DNA of 64,000 nucleotides from Schizochytrium sp. TIO01 (Eukaryota; Protista; Bigyra: Labyrinthulomycetes), in NCBI GenBank assembly GCA_004764695.1, contig SMSO01000035.1, positions 248,001-312,000 of the forward strand. Direction: 5' to 3'. Each line of letters starts with the position of its first letter. Within the stretch, counting starts at the first letter, position 1. Shown here piece after piece: positions 16,337-35,908 of the stretch. Under the pieces are notes generated by a model. That model had not been told where the DNA came from, did not search any database, and saw only the letters and a program-made list of their open reading frames with translations. The position numbers were made by a program, and so were the translations under genes.

Positions 16337-16606
16337 GAGAAAGTAAAATGGTATTCTATTGACGAACAAACAGCCTTGCGCAAAACCAATGCCAAAGCAG
16401 TTCCCTCTCTCGCAAAAGCTGGCTGCCTCTGCCTTTGGGTGGGTACCCGAGAGGACGCTTATCCTCTCTGCACAGGCGATGGCAGTCAGATTTCTACAGC
16501 CAATCAGGCCCCGGATCAGGTTTCCTGAGCGGGAGAATCATCACTCACCCTGAGACTCAGGCATATTTAGGGGCGGCCCATTCCGATTAAATTAAACTTT
16601 ATTTAA

Positions 16607-27172: not shown

Positions 27173-28570
27173 ATGCAGCACAATGACATGACCGCCTCGG
27201 AGTCCAACGTGACATCCTCCATGGCCGCCATGAGCGTGTCCGAACACCGCTCCCCGCACGTGAACAAGGACTCCGCCATCGCCGTCGTCTGCCCTTTCTC
27301 CTCTGGCGAGCTCCTCGCCGAGCGTATCCGTGAGCTCGGCTACAAGCTCGTACTCGTGTTCCTGTGCAAGAAGGCCGAAGACGGTGTGCTCAGCTGCGTG
27401 GTTGAGGGTGACTACGAGGTCTTCTTCACTGGAGACTACTCGCAGACCGTTCAGCTCCTCCGTGAGCTGCCCTGCAAGGTTGAGCTCATCATCCCCGGTG
27501 CCGAGAACGGAGTCATTGTCGCAGACCACCTCGCCGCCACAATGGGCCTCGTCCACAACCCCACAGAATACAGCGTTGCTCGCCGCAGCAAGTACCTCAT
27601 GGGCGAGACCATCAGAGCCGCTGGAGTGCGTGCTGTAAAGCAGACAATTGCAACCGAATGGGAGCACATTGAGAGCTTCATCCTGGACTGGAACCCGAAT
27701 CCTTTCAAGGTCATCGTGAAGCCTAACGCCTCTGCTGGATCTGATGATGTGTTTCTCTGCAAGAACATTGACGAAGTCCGTGCTGCGTTTGACTGCATCA
27801 ACGGCGCCATTAACGAGTTTGGTGAGGTGAACGAGGGTGTGCTCGTACAGGAGTTCTTGGAGGGAACCGAGTTTGTTGTTGACTCAGTCAGCCGCAATGG
27901 AGAGCACAAGGTCATTGCCATCTGGCAGTACGACAAGCGTTCTTTGAACGGACAATTCAACAACTACTTCGGTATGCAGCTCCGTGCCGTTACCACGGAG
28001 CTTGAGGAGGCGCTTGTTGCTTACAACGCCGAGGTTCTCGACGCTCTTCACATTAACCACGGACCCTCCCACGCCGAGATCTTCGTCACTCGCGACGATA
28101 TCGTCCTTGTCGAAGTCGGTGCTCGTATCCACGGTGGCCACGGCACATGGAAGCCCCTGGCCCAAGCTGCTTACGGCTACAACCAGATCGACGAGACCGT
28201 CAACGCCTACATGCGTCCTGACCTCTTCGAAGCCCTCCCGCCATACCCCATGGAGCTCCGTGTCCATGCTCGCGAAGTCTTCCTCGTGAACCGCTTCGAT
28301 GGAATCCTCCGCAGCCTTGACGGCATGGAGCGTGTCCGCAGCCTCAACTCCTTCCTCAAGGAGGACCTTTCTGTGCGCCCTGGCTCGCGTATGACCAAGA
28401 CCATTGACCTCTTTACCATGCCCGGCCGTGTCCAGCTTCTGCACCACGATGCCGAGCAGGTCAAGCAAGACTACATTCGCATCCACGAGATGCTTCTCGA
28501 TGGCGATGTGTTCGAAATTGTCCACGATGACAAGTCCATCGAGGCCAATGCTGGTCCTGCCGAGGAGTAA
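27173..28570 (+). CDS. ATP-grasp ligase (L-amino-acid ligase / DdaF-NikS-like subgroup)
   Basis: ATP-grasp motifs ARRSKYLM, VIVKPNASAGSDDV, VLVQEFLEGTEFVVD and HAEIF...LVEVGARIHGG; N-terminal VVCPFSSG; extreme C/G third-position bias. Confidence 0.85.
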   Translation: MQHNDMTASESNVTSSMAAMSVSEHRSPHVNKDSAIAVVCPFSSGELLAERIRELGYKLVLVFLCKKAEDGVLSCVVEGDYEVFFTGDYSQTVQLLRELPCKVELIIPGAENGVIVADHLAATMGLVHNPTEYSVARRSKYLMGETIRAAGVRAVKQTIATEWEHIESFILDWNPNPFKVIVKPNASAGSDDVFLCKNIDEVRAAFDCINGAINEFGEVNEGVLVQEFLEGTEFVVDSVSRNGEHKVIAIWQYDKRSLNGQFNNYFGMQLRAVTTELEEALVAYNAEVLDALHINHGPSHAEIFVTRDDIVLVEVGARIHGGHGTWKPLAQAAYGYNQIDETVNAYMRPDLFEALPPYPMELRVHAREVFLVNRFDGILRSLDGMERVRSLNSFLKEDLSVRPGSRMTKTIDLFTMPGRVQLLHHDAEQVKQDYIRIHEMLLDGDVFEIVHDDKSIEANAGPAEE

Positions 28571-29152
28571 ACTCTCGCACGCTGTGTTTTGCCGTAATCC
28601 CTTATCATACTGTCCCGCCTACGCGCTCTGCTTCGCGATGAGTACTTTAGTTTCGACCCGTATCTGATACCAACCCATCTTGTGTGATTGTCTGTTTTCA
28701 TATGTTTGCTTTTCTTGCGGTGCAGTTCTTTGTACTCCTCACATTTCGTTGTTGATCTTGCCCTCGCCCGATGCATTAAATCTTGCAACAGCTCTTCCGA
28801 ATAACAAACTATTTTCCAAGGTATTTAAAATGCTCAATACATTCATTATTTTTATGTCTTCTCGTCCATAGGAAAGCTCATTTGATCAATCACTATGCTT
28901 GTGATGAAGAGTGAGTGCCCTTGCGTACATCATTGTTTGTGTTGCTCATTTGTGCTGCTTTGGCTCCCGTGTGGTCTATCTCTGACAACCGCAGCTACTG
29001 GGCTAAAATAAAATCATGTGGCTAGACAATCATTATTGTGCAACATCGATTTATTGAATCTAGATCTAACATGGCTCTGCTGAACCATAAAAGAGATCAC
29101 GCTTTCGTATTCTTCCTACACTTCAAGATGAGACCCCATTCTCCATTACAAT

Positions 29153-29195
29153 TACATTACCCTACTAGTGCCTACATTACCCTACTAGTGCCTAC
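29153..29195. repeat. 20-bp perfect tandem duplication (TACATTACCCTACTAGTGCC x2)
   Basis: Read directly. Confidence 0.9.
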
Positions 29196-29583
29196 TTATG
29201 AACCTGATCGTTGTAAAGAATAGCCAAGAATTTTCGTCGAGAGGAATTGAAGTTGGTATGTAAGGACTGGACCAAATTATACAACTTGCTCATGGACCAT
29301 TAGAAATAAAGTTGAATACTTGAAGCCAAAGACCTGCCTTTCCCGAAGTTCCCTGATGTGTCGTCACACTCGCGAACGTCAACGACCGTGGAAATAACTG
29401 ATGACGTTTTTTAATGAACAAAGTGTCACTCTGTTATAGGCGCAGTAGGAGTTGAACAAAATGATGATACTCTGATCTTCTACGTGTTAAGTAAGTGCGA
29501 TCAAGGAATGCAATAACAGCAAACCCGATTGCGAGGCAGGTTGGAGCAGAACCACAGAGGCTTTGGAGGTCATAGACGGGATC

Positions 29584-30009
29584 ATGGTTGCGACGATCAA
29601 GGTGCAGTACTGTGGAGGGTGAGGTAAGTATGGCTTGTTTGTTTTTAATTAGAGGCAACTTCGTGCGGAGTATTCTGGTGTTAAAAAAGTTGAGGCTAAC
29701 TTTCTTGATTCTTGGCGTCGCATGCAATCTCAATCTAATTGATCTGCTGCGTGCTTGCATGGTGGTGACGGTTAGGCTACGCTCGCCATTTCCTTCGGCT
29801 CAAGAATGAGCTTTATGAGGAATTTGGCGAGGACGTCAAGGTTGTGGGTGCGGAGGATCCCGGCACGACAGGAAACTTCGAGGTAACCCTCGTCGAGACC
29901 GGTGCGCTACTTCACTCCAAGACGAATCGTGGCCAAGGGAAAATGTCAGTCCCCTGCTGAAGTTCAGGCTATCGTGGACCAGATTCAGGATTACCTCGAT
30001 AGCAAATAG
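29584..30009 (+). CDS. SELENOW: Selenoprotein W-like (Rdx family), 2 exons: 29584-29623 and 29776-30009; Sec UGA at 29620-29622; 1-nt frameshift at A-run 29940-29943
   Basis: Spliced translation MVATIKVQYCGGUGYARHFLRLKNELYEEFGEDVKVVGAEDPGTTGNFEVTLVETGALLHSKTNRGQGK(+1)CQSPAEVQAIVDQIQDYLDSK, 90 aa. CxxU falls at residues 10-13 as in vertebrate SelW; G.FEV and LHSK motifs are present. The GTAAGT...TTAG intron (29624-29775) restores the GY after Sec. Confidence 0.88.
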
Positions 30010-30239
30010 ATATGGGGACATTCGTCTCGTGGTGAGGTGCGCTTTTATGCACCTCTTGCCCATTCGACAGCACTGCCACTGCAATAAGAGACCAAACACC
30101 AATGCTCTTCATTTTACCGAATTCCGCTTTATCTTTTTTCGCCATTGCAAAGTTCATCTCTTATGCTTCTTCTTTAAGAGAAGAGGGCGTCTTGTCACAA
30201 CATTGTTTTGCAAGCCTTTGGTTGATGTACTCTGAGACA

Positions 30240-30319
30240 AGCCCAATATGAAGAACCAAGGCTCAAAGTATACTACGGCTCTTCCACTGTAGGGGTCTTG
30301 CCTGTTCCGACTCTGGGTT
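30240..30319 (+). promoter_or_regulatory. SECIS element candidate (type II) in the SELENOW 3'-UTR
   Basis: Helix I AGCCCA/TGGGTT; core ATGA (30248-51) opposite GA (30309-10); helix II GAAC/GTTC plus CAAGGCTC/GGGTCTTG with a CCT bulge; unpaired AAA (30265-67); apical mini-helix CTACGG/CTGTAG. Folded by eye. Confidence 0.72.
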
Positions 30320-30944
30320 ATATTTTGCTCTGTTGTTTCAATGTTTCTATTAATCAACTTACAACATGTTGCCTTTTCATTCATCCTTGGTGCTTCTCCA
30401 CTCCTCCGTTTGATCGATTCGTTAGGTGCTTAAATTAAGCCAACGTATTAGTAGAGCACATTTAATTTTATTCTAGACACGGCAGAATTGTTGAATAGCC
30501 CCGGAATCACATCTGATTAACTAATATTTAGTTGTTTAATTTATCCGAGAGCAAGGGCAGATAAGCAATTGAACTTATCTTCAAATACATAATTGCAACG
30601 GCAACTAGCCAAGGCAACTTGCCTGACCAATACAAAGAAGTCTTGCCTTTTTTAACCAATTTAAAAGAAACAAAACTTTGGAAATTAAAATCCGTTCTCG
30701 TAAATATTCAAAATGATAGACAATAAGAACAGAGTCTTCAAATTATTTTATTTTCTAGATAGCCTTTTCTTCGCCTAGAGATGCACCCTTCGTGATGCCA
30801 ACCCAACTCAGCAGCTATATTAAAGGGGGGTTGAGTAAATATGCTTTCCCCCATCTCTGGCTGATATATATGCGCAAGGGACTTCCAAACTTTGTTAGTG
30901 ATGTTTTTTGAAGGGAAAATAACAAGGGCTAATAGCTAAACCCA

Positions 30945-30976
30945 GACTTGGTGATCATCGGACTTGGTGATCATCG
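30945..30976. repeat. 16-bp perfect tandem duplication (GACTTGGTGATCATCG x2)
   Basis: Read directly. Confidence 0.9.
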
Positions 30977-31385
30977 CCGCCCTGGACGAGTAATTAATCC
31001 TTAGCAACCATCGTTTCATCTGAAACCACAGAGGAGATCAAAGAGATGGCGAATGAGTGGATCCACCTGCCTGATTCTTAAGTACATTTAAAATGTATCA
31101 AAATCACAGCGTGTTCCGAACGTAAGGTGTAATAAAACCTCTCATAGGTGGTATCAACCATGCCAAGAACGAATCCATTTGTTTTCAATGCTGTTGCTAC
31201 TGCTGCTGTTATGGCTGTTGTCAAATGTTGGGACTGTAACGGAAGTTCCGCGACGGTCCCGCACAAAAATCGATTCAAACGAGTTGATCGTAAGCAAAAA
31301 CAAAGAAATGAGACTAGAAACAATACCAAGGATGTTGAAACTTCAAACGTCCAAGGTTTTAAAGTGTGTGTTAATCCCGTTCTGC

Positions 31386-33641
31386 TTAAGCCAAATATTT
31401 GTATTCGCTCTTGGGAGGAGGCGAGGACCGCTCAAGATATTCACGGTCAATGAGGCTGGCAATGCGTTGCTTGATGAGAGGTACAGTGGCTGGGAAGCGA
31501 AGCTGGCGGAAAAGTTCTTCAATTAACGCCTCGTGGCCAAGAGTCTTGCGCGCCTTCATAATACGAACGATAGCAGCATCAACTTGGTACTGACGATCCT
31601 GCTGGACACGTTCGTGAGTTTCTTTGTTTTCTGTGGATGTTTCTTTGATCTGAATAGAATTGATCTTAATGCGGATGCGATCCGACTTAAAGGCCGTGTT
31701 GATTGCGAAAGTGTCCGTCGGCTTGATCGGATCGCGAACACTAGCCTTCGGCTCACGAAGCAAAATACGGGCCTGCGGGCTGCCAAGAGAAAGCAAGGTA
31801 CGGTGAAGCTCGCCGTCCTCCATTCCGGTACGTTCCTTGAGTACAGCTGCAGTGAGCTCCTGAGCTCCAGGCATGTCATTGTACAGAACGAGCACGACGG
31901 CCTGGTAAATAGAAACCTCAAGCTCCTTACGGCCCAAGGGAAGGTCAGCACGCAGGATGCAATGACCAAGAGAGTGTTGCCATGTGAGACGACGGCCCTT
32001 GAACATGCCTTCGGCGCCTGAGTAGAACTTCTCAAAAGCTGCTTCGCACTGAACCATGCGCTCAGGAAGACGTAATGACTTCATCACAGGGTAGACGGGC
32101 CAGTTGCTTGTACTGAGAACGTTGACATGAATCTCAGTGTCAAAGCCGCGCTGAAGGTAAGCTGGACTCTTCTCGAATTGAGTCATGTTATCGCGTGAGA
32201 TATCCATATCCTTGAACATGCCCTCGAGACGATTTGTAAAACGTGATCCGCATTCTGTCTTGAGCTTGGTAATCATAGAGCGCTCCAAATCGGTGGAAGC
32301 AGAACGACCGAGCAACAAGCGCTTTGCGAGATCCTTCTTGTAAAAGGCTTCAAAAACATCCTTCGCACTGAGGAAACGAAAGAGTACCACGACCTTTTCT
32401 AGAAGAGCCTCGATGGCTTCATCTCCACCGGCACCCTTGACACCAGAGCGAAGTTGACGGTCGATGTATTTCGCGATGAGCTCGGCAGGGCGGTTTCCAC
32501 GCGAGTTAAGAAACGTCTCGAAGGCGTCCCGAATGGTGCGATCAAAGTCCTCGTTGCCCTGCATAGCAGTACGCTGAAGCTCCATAAGATCCTCCATGAG
32601 TTGCAAGAGTGCGGGGACCATTTCCTTTTCCTTTGCGGCATCTTGGTTCTGTACAATCTGCTCACCGCGACGCTTCACGTACTCCGATAGCGCTGCACGC
32701 ATCTTGACAAGAGCGTCTACACGCTTGAAGAGAACAAACATACGTCCAAGATCCTCTGTACGTTTTTCGCGCATGAGCGTGTCGAAGCCCTTCTCCAGAA
32801 GAACCGGCACATGCTCGTTTACGAGCTCCTGCTCGCAGACTCTGACAAGCGGAATGCGAGTCTGTGGGTCCAAGTACCTTGCCACGCGCTGCTTTTCCTC
32901 GTCGAGACGACGGTCCACGTGCCGAAGGTAGTCAGGCACCTGCGATTGCTCCAGCAGTGAGCTACTTTCGGCTCTGTAAAAGGTGCGACTTTCGTCGAGC
33001 AGAACCTTCTCAAACTTGGACTCGTACAGGTCCAAAGCCACCAGCATACGCACCACGCACGTGCCGGTGGACTGGTTAACGGACTCTCCAGAACGTTCGC
33101 GGGCAATGAGGTCCAGAAATCCTCGAATAACCTTTGACTCAACTTCGGGGGCATTTCCAAGGTCTTTGCGGAACATGCGCAAGCCAATATCCCAGAGCGA
33201 TCTGAGCGATGGCTCGCCGATAATGTAAGAACGATCGAGGTAGAGGAAAATGCTGCGGATAGAGTGCATCTGCTGACAGTAGTTCTGCCACATATCGGTA
33301 ACGAGCTCAAGGAAGGCGGCGTGATCAGGAGTTTGGCCTACAAGTGACCGCAAGGAGGCCTTGATGTGACGCTCGAGAACAGTTTCAAGACGTCTGCAAA
33401 GTTCTTCAGCTTGTTTATGCATGCAGAGACCCTCAACCATATGGTAGAGCTCCTCACGAGATTGCTCTACAGGACGGCGTTCTTGGATGGCGCGAACAGC
33501 AGCCTCGAGCGCATTCCAGCTGGATTCGAGGAAATCTGCAGGTAGAGAAGGCTTTGCCTTGCGAAGAGTAATCTTCAGACGTTTAGCAGGACCTCCAGGG
33601 CCTCCCCGAGCCCCACCAGCTCCACTGCGATGTCCAATCAT
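31386..33641 (-). CDS. CUL4: Cullin-4 (first ATG at 33641; the ORF track extends to a non-ATG start)
   Basis: CUL4-type N-terminus (KPSLPADF..SW..L..AV.AI, IRSIFLYLDRSY), cullin domain KDVFEAFYKKDLAKRLLLGRSAS and KLKTECG..FT..LEGMFKD, neddylation site DRQYQVDAAIVRIMKARK. Confidence 0.93.
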   Translation of the reverse strand: MIGHRSGAGGARGGPGGPAKRLKITLRKAKPSLPADFLESSWNALEAAVRAIQERRPVEQSREELYHMVEGLCMHKQAEELCRRLETVLERHIKASLRSLVGQTPDHAAFLELVTDMWQNYCQQMHSIRSIFLYLDRSYIIGEPSLRSLWDIGLRMFRKDLGNAPEVESKVIRGFLDLIARERSGESVNQSTGTCVVRMLVALDLYESKFEKVLLDESRTFYRAESSSLLEQSQVPDYLRHVDRRLDEEKQRVARYLDPQTRIPLVRVCEQELVNEHVPVLLEKGFDTLMREKRTEDLGRMFVLFKRVDALVKMRAALSEYVKRRGEQIVQNQDAAKEKEMVPALLQLMEDLMELQRTAMQGNEDFDRTIRDAFETFLNSRGNRPAELIAKYIDRQLRSGVKGAGGDEAIEALLEKVVVLFRFLSAKDVFEAFYKKDLAKRLLLGRSASTDLERSMITKLKTECGSRFTNRLEGMFKDMDISRDNMTQFEKSPAYLQRGFDTEIHVNVLSTSNWPVYPVMKSLRLPERMVQCEAAFEKFYSGAEGMFKGRRLTWQHSLGHCILRADLPLGRKELEVSIYQAVVLVLYNDMPGAQELTAAVLKERTGMEDGELHRTLLSLGSPQARILLREPKASVRDPIKPTDTFAINTAFKSDRIRIKINSIQIKETSTENKETHERVQQDRQYQVDAAIVRIMKARKTLGHEALIEELFRQLRFPATVPLIKQRIASLIDREYLERSSPPPKSEYKYLA

Positions 33642-35908
33642 TATGCCCGAATCAATAGAATATAACACAAAGATACTAAGCTCCGACGTCAAGTATCAAT
33701 CTGTCAAAATGTATGAGTACGAAGAAGATCAAAATAATGATCACGAAAAGCAATATAATGAATGCGAAAGATTAATCAAACGCCACGATATGACTCAAAA
33801 GATATCCAAGACGAACACAGCAGTGCACGAGAAGAGATCTACAAAGCTTGGCGAAACACCTGCAAAGACTATACAGAGACCGAGCGAGACGCGACGCAAG
33901 TAAGCAAAAGCGAAGCTTTGTCAAAGTAACGAATGAACGACCAGACAAAAGAATGGAATAATATGGTTGGGTCAGTGCCCAAAGGAAAGCAACTTTTCAC
34001 AGGACTAGCGAGGCTGCGGCGGTCGCTGCTCGCGCTAGGAGCTTATCTCTTGCGATGCTCGCTTCCGCCGCGGACGACGTAGCAGCCGCCTCGCTCGCCG
34101 CTACAGACGCGCTAGATAGGGTCTGGTGGCCTCCATGAGCGAAAGCAGTCTCCACTGAGAAATTCCAACGAAAATAGATTCAGATGAAATATTTAGACGA
34201 ATTTCTTCATACAAATCTGATAAGAAGCAAACGAAACTTTGAGCTTTTTTCTGTTAAGACCCAGCAATTGCCCCAAAGAAACTCCCAGATATGCCCCAGG
34301 TCTTCAGGTTAGGGACTAGAGCGAAGTACTGGAGCACCTGCAGGCAAGAACCTCAGTCGGTTAGATCCTTGCGAAAACTCGAAAGCTTGCAAGCGATTTC
34401 TTTTGCTGCTGTTAAGAACCAAAGTGAGGTGGTGGTTAGCTTTATTACGAAGATGGAAAAAAGATTCACCTTAATACATCTCACAACCGCAATATCAGAA
34501 TAAGGTGTATGAGCTGGAGTTCATCATTCACCATCGCAGGGAGCTTAGCTATATTTTCGACCGCCAAAGTGCAATGAGCAAGCTGATAAATCGCAAACAT
34601 TGAATGAGGATGCATACCTCTGCAAGCGTTGCTGGTTTTACATGCATTGCGCATTTTGACACCACAGTGATTGGAGCTGTGTAGCCAGCCACGTTCTACA
34701 TCATTCGCACGTTTGCATAAATTCATGCGTACTTGCGACAAGGTTTGGAGAAGGTTTGTCTATGCGTGCGAGCTCAGCAGCATACTTCTATTAGGTGGGA
34801 TGCATCATAATCGAATGTAAAGTCATCATCAAAACAACCTTGTTTGGTACCAGTTTGACAATAATACACTGGATTTTAGTGATCAGCATCAGCTTCTGAA
34901 GCTTTTGCTCAACTATTTCCACCGTTCTCGTAGACGATACAACGTACATGAGTCAGTGCCATACTATGGTAGCAATGCCTCACGGCATAATCCCTGCCTC
35001 CAATTTCTTTTGTCTTTGGTACTCCAGCTTCACATCACAGTCTTGCGACTCTTGCGGCGTCTAAAGCTCTTCAAACGGACCAACCGCACAGTGCTATCAT
35101 CGTGCGCAATTATGCCCAAGTTGGGTTGGAGATTATCATGAATTCCAGGATTCACAGCACCTTGCGAAAGCCTCCAAGAATAAGTGGCGCCGTCCTTTGA
35201 CCCTCCAAAAGCAAAGCCACTCAAATAAGAATATGCACCCATAGTTATCTATCCTGTAGCCAGCTTTGCGCAGACGCTTTGAACGCGTTACTTTGCACAC
35301 ATCGGCGCTATCGTGTTCACAATCTTCAAAGTCTTTACAGGTTCACGTCAGGCGCAAGAAACCCAACAAAAGCAGAAGGTGTACGAAGAGTATTAAAATG
35401 CATTGAATTCCTGGTGGCTGCGGCTATTGCATGTCTAAGATGTGCTATGAAGGAATAAGGAAGCTGGCTGCGAAGCCGTAGAAAGCAATGATCGTAGCGT
35501 TTGTTGACCAAACCAAATGATTTACTTGCACATTGGTTGCCTCATTGCTGAATTTGTTGATGAAACCTCACTTCACGTTCATTCATTCGTGTGTTTGTGA
35601 ATGAGTGAGAAGTCTTCGCTATTCGCTATTCAATCTCATTGGCCTATTACGAAATTTATTAGTTCATTAATTGAATTGCAAGTTCACTAATTTTCTGATA
35701 AAGAGTTTGATTGTCAGAAATCACCACCTTTGGCAGAGAGACAAGCAAACCAGTCTCGACACGCATCCCACCACCGGTAAAGCCTGGGGGGAATCCAGTC
35801 TTCGATAGCTTCTCAACCTGCAGCGTTGACCTCGCGTTACTCGAGCCCTCCTTGGCCACGTTTTCGTCGTGTGTAGTGCTAGATTGCTTTAACTCACTTT
35901 TCATCAAG

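Follow-up and report, generated by a model that had tools for sequence, protein, structure and literature searches.

Selenoprotein W (SelW) and its protist relatives are already well known, and the gene described here is an ordinary member of that family which ORF finders miss. The redox motif of mouse SelW is CGAU, and links of the mammalian protein to 14-3-3 proteins and to glutathione are known. The present gene comes from a close relative of Hondaea among the thraustochytrids, a group of labyrinthulomycete stramenopiles that are industrial producers of DHA. The literature found on selenoproteins of Aurantiochytrium or thraustochytrids consisted only of nutrition and feed papers, and labyrinthulomycetes are not mentioned in a survey of algal selenoproteomes (PMC7539508).

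The window analysed in this work is the whole 64,000-nucleotide stretch of DNA, and positions given below without a contig refer to it. Our main reading, to which we assign a probability of roughly 0.88, is that the window carries an expressed two-exon nuclear SelW gene for a CGGU protein of about 90 residues, that selenocysteine (Sec) is inserted at its UGA codon by means of a 3′ SECIS element, and that a break in its reading frame is artefactual.

Structure, expression and reading frame of the gene

All features of the SelW-type gene lie on the plus strand. The coding part of exon 1 (29584–29623), as defined by translation, comprises MVATIKVQYCGG, the Sec codon and the first base of Gly14; read from the ATG at 29584, these residues are followed by TGA G and then by GTAAGT. 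The product of exon 1 matches the N-termini of orthologs, for example ...VQYCGG*GY. The contigs of two public sequencing runs, X17 and X19, both start at 29536, giving a 5′ UTR of at least 29536–29583, and no further ATG is present in that segment upstream of 29584. The Sec TGA (29620–29622) is in frame and corresponds to residue 13 in the C-G-G-U motif, as placed by the ortholog TGA and by the register of mouse SelW. One base past this codon begins a phase 1 intron of 152 nt (29624–29775, GTAAGT...TTAG), the limits of which are given by contig junctions. Exon 2 opens with GC TAC at 29776, and its frame from 29778 reads YARHFLRLKNELYEEFGEDVKVVGAEDPGTTGNFEVTLVETGALLHSKTNRGQGK. Its coding part (29776–30009, up to the TAG at 30007–30009) contains the Rdx domain, the GNFEV and LLHSK motifs and a C-terminal helix, with one spurious base inside. 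The motif spanning the splice is C10-G-G-U13-G14-Y15. With the spurious base omitted, 40 and 233 coding bases make 90 codons plus a stop, and the product is predicted to be a small protein with a single domain and about 90 residues, within the SelW-type range of about 85–95. There is no in-frame ATG in exon 2 ahead of the conserved domain, so the mRNA would encode just 12 residues without recoding. The first-pass annotation, made from the letters of the window, had placed the exons, the intron, the GNFEV and LLHSK motifs and the C-G-G-TGA-G donor context correctly.

It had also described the gene as invisible to ORF tracks and as probably missed or truncated by automated annotation, and both descriptions are accurate. 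The six-frame list holds no ORF that covers the gene, only fragments of 38 and 35 residues, and the protein database has just a 54-residue fragment started at GTG and an 85-residue artefact in which an intronic TGA is read as Trp. The gene is present as a single copy in the genome, where a search with the database fragment P0002 recovers the locus in two frames.

Contigs assembled from four public runs of four studies (X1, X7, X17 and X19) were compared with the window over 28600–31400. At the junction 29623|29776, contigs of X7, X17 and X19 (three runs, three studies) lack a segment of exactly 152 nt bounded by GT..AG, which is the splice proposed from the letters, the RNA status of these runs being guessed; the DNA run X1 retains the 152-nt intron, with two SNPs within it. 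The X17 contigs cover 28600–29115, then 29536–30383 minus the intron, and then 30784 onward, leaving the flanking intergenic DNA between them uncovered. This is the pattern of RNA, the RNA status of X17 being itself a guess. The mRNA spans at least 29536–30383 with the intron removed, and includes both the UGA and the candidate SECIS element, beyond which it continues for 64 bases. The 3′ UTR covers at least 30010–30383, the X17 contig being unbroken as far as that position and that of X19 reaching 30306; as they are taken from assembled contigs, all these extents are minimum values. Polyadenylation before 30240, which the first-pass annotation had named as a possible objection, is not what the transcript-like contig displays, since it runs on past the hairpin. 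In X7, also guessed to be RNA, one 5.5-kb contig covers both intergenic regions yet lacks the 152-nt intron; this contig may reflect a mixture of RNA and DNA, read-through transcription or an intron-less allele.

The region around the gene is gene-dense, with few introns. A single-exon gene for an ATP-grasp ligase-like protein (27173–28570, plus strand) lies on one side and a single-exon gene for cullin-4 (31386–33692, minus strand) on the other. Compared with Cullin-4 of Hondaea fermentalgiana, the cullin shows 84% identity, and compared with that of Mucochytrium quahogii, 61%.

In the letters of the window, the frame of exon 2 is not open as far as the TAG at 30007–30009. It ends with ...RGQGKMSVPC at a TGA stop (29958–29960), and the conserved C-terminus KCQSPAEVQAIVDQIQDYLDSK*, ending at that TAG, sits in the +1 frame; this break had been overlooked when exon 2 was first read as uninterrupted. 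Taken as they stand, the window's own letters would mean that the species has a real SelW-type gene, of which the assembled strain carries a frameshifted allele or pseudogene with a product ending in ...GQGKMSVPC and lacking the C-terminal helix. The public runs speak against this. The window has AAGGG at 29935–29939 where the runs have AGGG or AAGG, and the surplus base is absent in four of four runs from four studies, including X1, the best DNA run (word share 0.92). The base is missing at 29935 in X1, X7 and X17, which gives GGC CAG GGA AAA TGT, and at 29937 in X19, which gives GGC CAA GGA AAA TGT; either form of the deletion restores RGQGKCQS. The runs hold two 10-nt alleles, CCAGGGAAAA and CCAAGGAAAA, the difference between which is a synonymous A/G change, and the 11-nt form of the window, CCAAGGGAAAA (CCAAGGG, 29933–29939), looks like a consensus in which both alleles were merged. 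Furthermore, the homologues all read on through GQGKC(Q/E/T)S..E...I, the database fragment P0002 agrees residue for residue with the C-terminus once the frame is corrected, and the C-terminus of a second database protein, P0005, is also intact. Because four of four runs lack the base, we take it as an artefact of the assembly at a synonymous A/G polymorphism, which is most likely, by about nine to one over a true frameshift. That the assembled strain has a frameshifted allele or a pseudogene is therefore, in our judgement, quite improbable, and the assembly consensus is flagged here as erroneous at 29935–29939.

Family membership and the conserved TGA

The two exons were searched separately. 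Exon 2 alone reaches 25.7 bits with the Pfam family Rdx (PF10262), for which the cut-off is 22.6 (E = 1.3e-5, over profile positions 14–60 of 74). Among solved structures, mouse selenoprotein W (2NPB, E = 0.0024) is the sole significant relative. Both results agree with the Rdx/SelW assignment that had been made from the motifs. The alignment with 2NPB starts at SelW residue 16, onto which exon-2 residue 2 falls; this puts C10-G-G-U13-G14-Y15 in the register of the mammalian motif. Among named proteins, the nearest is a dinoflagellate entry, 'Selenoprotein W, partial' of Durusdinium trenchii (CAK9062863.1), at 73% identity. Within the Rdx family, the SelW type is indicated by the length of the product, by the register of its motif and by its best solved relative, and by its match to 2NPB the product would adopt a thioredoxin-like β-α-β-β-β-α fold.

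A genome-wide search with Pfam Rdx did not list the SelW-type locus, an omission explained by the intron and the frame break that divide the gene. The strongest Rdx-family match of the genome is another locus (L052, G000:C31:1932242–1932469, minus strand), with 83.8 bits, no internal stop and a frame of 177 residues. This member of the Rdx family may contain Cys or differ in some other way.

Scanning metagenome contigs yielded 43 ortholog loci (L009–L051), with relatives of 42–67% identity. In 21 of the 43 the motif (Y/F/W)C-x-x-TGA-G-(Y/F) is in frame with an unbroken upstream frame, and 10 further loci have the same C-x-x-TGA-G motif in an upstream exon. Orthologs with neither Cys nor Sec at this site had been considered as evidence that could tell against the gene. 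What was found is a TGA at the homologous site in at least 31 of the 43 loci, several of the others being too short upstream to judge, so Sec rather than Cys is the usual residue there.

The position of the intron can be compared in the same set. In L038, L042 and L047 a single base separates the TGA from the donor GT, just as in the window. A post-Sec-codon intron, phase 1 in Gly14, is also seen in L010, L012 and L026, as judged by an in-frame start at G-Y, and an intron one base past the Sec codon is absent at that place in many other orthologs.

Candidate SECIS element and selenocysteine machinery

The candidate SECIS element of the gene is a hairpin at 30240–30319, 238 nt past the stop, recognised by its fold and by a scan for pattern and energy. 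Helix I is formed by 30240–30245 with 30314–30319 (6 bp). In the fold, the core has AUGA (30248–30251) opposite GA (30309–30310). Helix II pairs 30253–30264 with 30293–30307 (12 bp, with a 3-nt bulge) and leads to an unpaired AAA (30265–30267). An apical mini-stem of 30273–30278 with 30287–30292 makes the candidate type 2. The ATGA/AAA/GA hairpin with both helices paired, as reported in the first-pass annotation, is present in the window; the reported distance of about 240 nt from the stop holds only once one base of CCAAGGG is removed.

The scan used an ad hoc pattern plus energy and was not SECISearch3. The pattern consisted of (A/G)UGA, 9–14 nt, an unpaired AA, a GA and pairing beside the core, and the energies of helix II and helix I were calculated with ViennaRNA. 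Over 29950–30700 this AA-type scan gave one candidate, the hairpin at 30240–30319. On both strands of the window (128 kb), there is no second candidate at an energy of -23.7 or below with at least 10 helix II positions paired. In twenty dinucleotide shuffles, hits of equal quality arose at a rate of 0.25 per 128 kb, or about 0.0014 per 700-nt 3′ region. When the entire 3′ UTR is folded, the minimum-energy structure still contains the helix of the candidate. An AA-type hit on the minus strand at 16541 has a better total energy, with helix II unformed beside the core and no coding sequence upstream, and was set aside as a chance hit. A looser scan, in which the AA was not required, is unspecific, with about ten equal or better matches in the window.

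The same scan was applied to the sequence downstream of three further genes in the genome, for a SelT-like protein (L053, G000:C24:4359288–4359707), a GPx (L056, G000:C35:2196164–2196475) and a SelK-like protein (L058). L053 and L056 each have one in-frame TGA, and the L058 match is without a stop. Elements of the same build lie 300–470 nt downstream, with AUGA(C), a helix strand of 12–13 nt, AAA, a mini-stem and (C/U)GA(C/A); the SECIS-like hairpins of L053 and L056 are strong or fair. When the window hairpin and these three candidates were aligned by MAFFT and folded by RNAalifold, the cores fell out of register and no structure resulted. Two further weak SelK-like matches, L059 (G000:C6:2009639–2009833) and L060 (G000:C30:3276741–3276914), have one in-frame TGA each. 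Where an ortholog locus extends far enough in the 3′ direction, an ATGA...GA hairpin is present past the stop in most cases. In the GC-rich orthologs L017–L022 (e.g. L019:665–705), an ATGAC...CGAC hairpin lies 53 nt past the stop, and its C-rich apical loop may be a C-type apical motif.

It might be argued that the gene does encode Sec, that the hairpin at 30240–30319 arose by chance, and that the working SECIS is another, non-canonical element of the 3′ UTR. In isolation, the hairpin folds no more stably than shuffled sequence does (z = -0.09), and most ortholog elements lie only 50–110 nt past the stop. With respect to the published core consensus UGAN/KGAW, the 5′ core of the window, UGAA, fits UGAN, and the 3′ core, CGAC, is off KGAW (PMC3753652). 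CGAC recurs in the SelT-like candidate of the same genome and in many orthologs, and we read it as a probable lineage trait, not a defect. An Rfam scan of 29300–30800 likewise gave no SECIS match, a blank that carries little weight because the same models were also blank on 19 of 19 TGA-bearing ortholog loci tested; the Rfam SECIS models fail on protist SECIS elements, and their silence is not to be taken as absence. Against a chance hairpin stand the expectation of about 0.0014 given above, the absence of any other candidate in 29950–30700 from both the AA-type scan and the looser one, and the build shared with the candidates of the same genome, which are likewise distant from their genes. 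We infer that the hairpin is a functional SECIS, and consider a chance hairpin with the true element elsewhere in the 3′ UTR to be highly improbable.

The genome (64 Mb in 37 contigs) was searched for the Sec machinery, which the first-pass annotation expected to find, and every component sought was matched. The tRNA-Sec gene (L001, G000:C36:4224424–4224509) scores 70.4 bits and is called tRNA-SeC(tca) by ARAGORN. SepSecS is matched with 279 bits, SelD (L006:640–2559, at about G000:C36:4254886–4256805) with 278 bits, domain III of eEFSec with 104 bits, and a PSTK-like protein with E = 8e-21, which is under the equivalog cut-off. The putative SBP2 homologue (L068, G000:C30:8774362–8774667, minus strand) is a divergent L7Ae domain in an open frame of 1187 residues. 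The sole PDB match of this domain is SBP2 (7ZJW chain B, E = 3e-26), and L068 is likely the SBP2 of this protist. The SelD and tRNA-Sec genes share a contig, on which only about 31 kb separates them. The selenophosphate synthetase carries, fused to its N-terminus, a pyridine-nucleotide-disulphide oxidoreductase domain; as the Pfam match begins at profile position 127, an upstream SelD exon is likely. As TGA terminates 3 of the 12 long ORFs in the window, the code is standard and TGA is not reassigned genome-wide.

Codon 13, the UGA, almost certainly encodes Sec. By analogy with established eukaryotic Sec decoding, SBP2 would bind the kink-turn of the SECIS and bring eEFSec and its Sec-tRNA(Sec) to the UGA, which would then be decoded as selenocysteine in place of termination. 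From what is known of the Rdx family, the product would be a small thiol/selenol oxidoreductase, cycling between a selenolate/thiol form and a Cys10–Sec13 selenenylsulfide. That the UGA terminates instead, leaving a non-coding transcript or a 12-residue peptide with exon 2 as a relic, is scarcely credible: TGA is indeed an ordinary stop in this genome, but the exon 2 protein is strongly conserved over dozens of lineages and scores above the Pfam threshold, the C-x-x-TGA-G-Y context is conserved, the genome has the full Sec machinery, and the transcript is assembled in several runs.

Significance and comparison with known Rdx-family selenoproteins

The main value of the finding is the correction of annotation, since this and other selenoprotein genes of the genome are absent or truncated in predicted proteomes. 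The known picture of selenoprotein W and of Sec decoding is unchanged. Selenium supply may matter in the cultivation of thraustochytrids. A wider picture, unlikely as we hold it to be, is that thraustochytrids possess a complete and wholly unannotated selenoproteome, that their SECIS elements with a CGAC-type 3′ core are missed by standard models, and that the post-Sec intron, common to at least three distant orthologs, is possibly linked to recoding. Such a link could consist, for example, in keeping the UGA too near the junction to trigger nonsense-mediated decay.

Close relatives of the window gene are the SelW proteins of protists and algae (Durusdinium trenchii CAK9062863.1 and L009–L051). 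They share 42–73% identity with it, the TGA at the same codon, the motifs YCGG-U-GY, TGNFEVT and HSK...GQGKC, and an ATGA...GA hairpin after the stop. The greater distance of its SECIS candidate from the stop, 238 nt, sets the window gene apart from most of these orthologs. Whereas the hairpin of L017–L022 is short and without AA in the loop, the candidate of the window is type 2 with AAA.

Like mouse SelW (2NPB), the window product is a small single-domain Rdx protein with C-x-x-U at residues 10–13 followed by G-Y; the sequence similarity between them is weak, and the window motif is CGGU. The (T)G-F-E-V and (L)-HSK motifs are common to it and mammalian SELENOW, and Sec in SELENOW is specified through a 3′-UTR SECIS, as it would be in the window by the candidate element. 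The window gene differs from the mammalian one in an extra conserved Cys in GQGKC and in the CGAC 3′ core of its SECIS, which is not KGAW. SelT, SelH and Rdx12 share with it the Pfam family PF10262, the CxxU motif and the thioredoxin-like fold predicted here, and SelT and SelH differ from it in being longer and in having other motifs.
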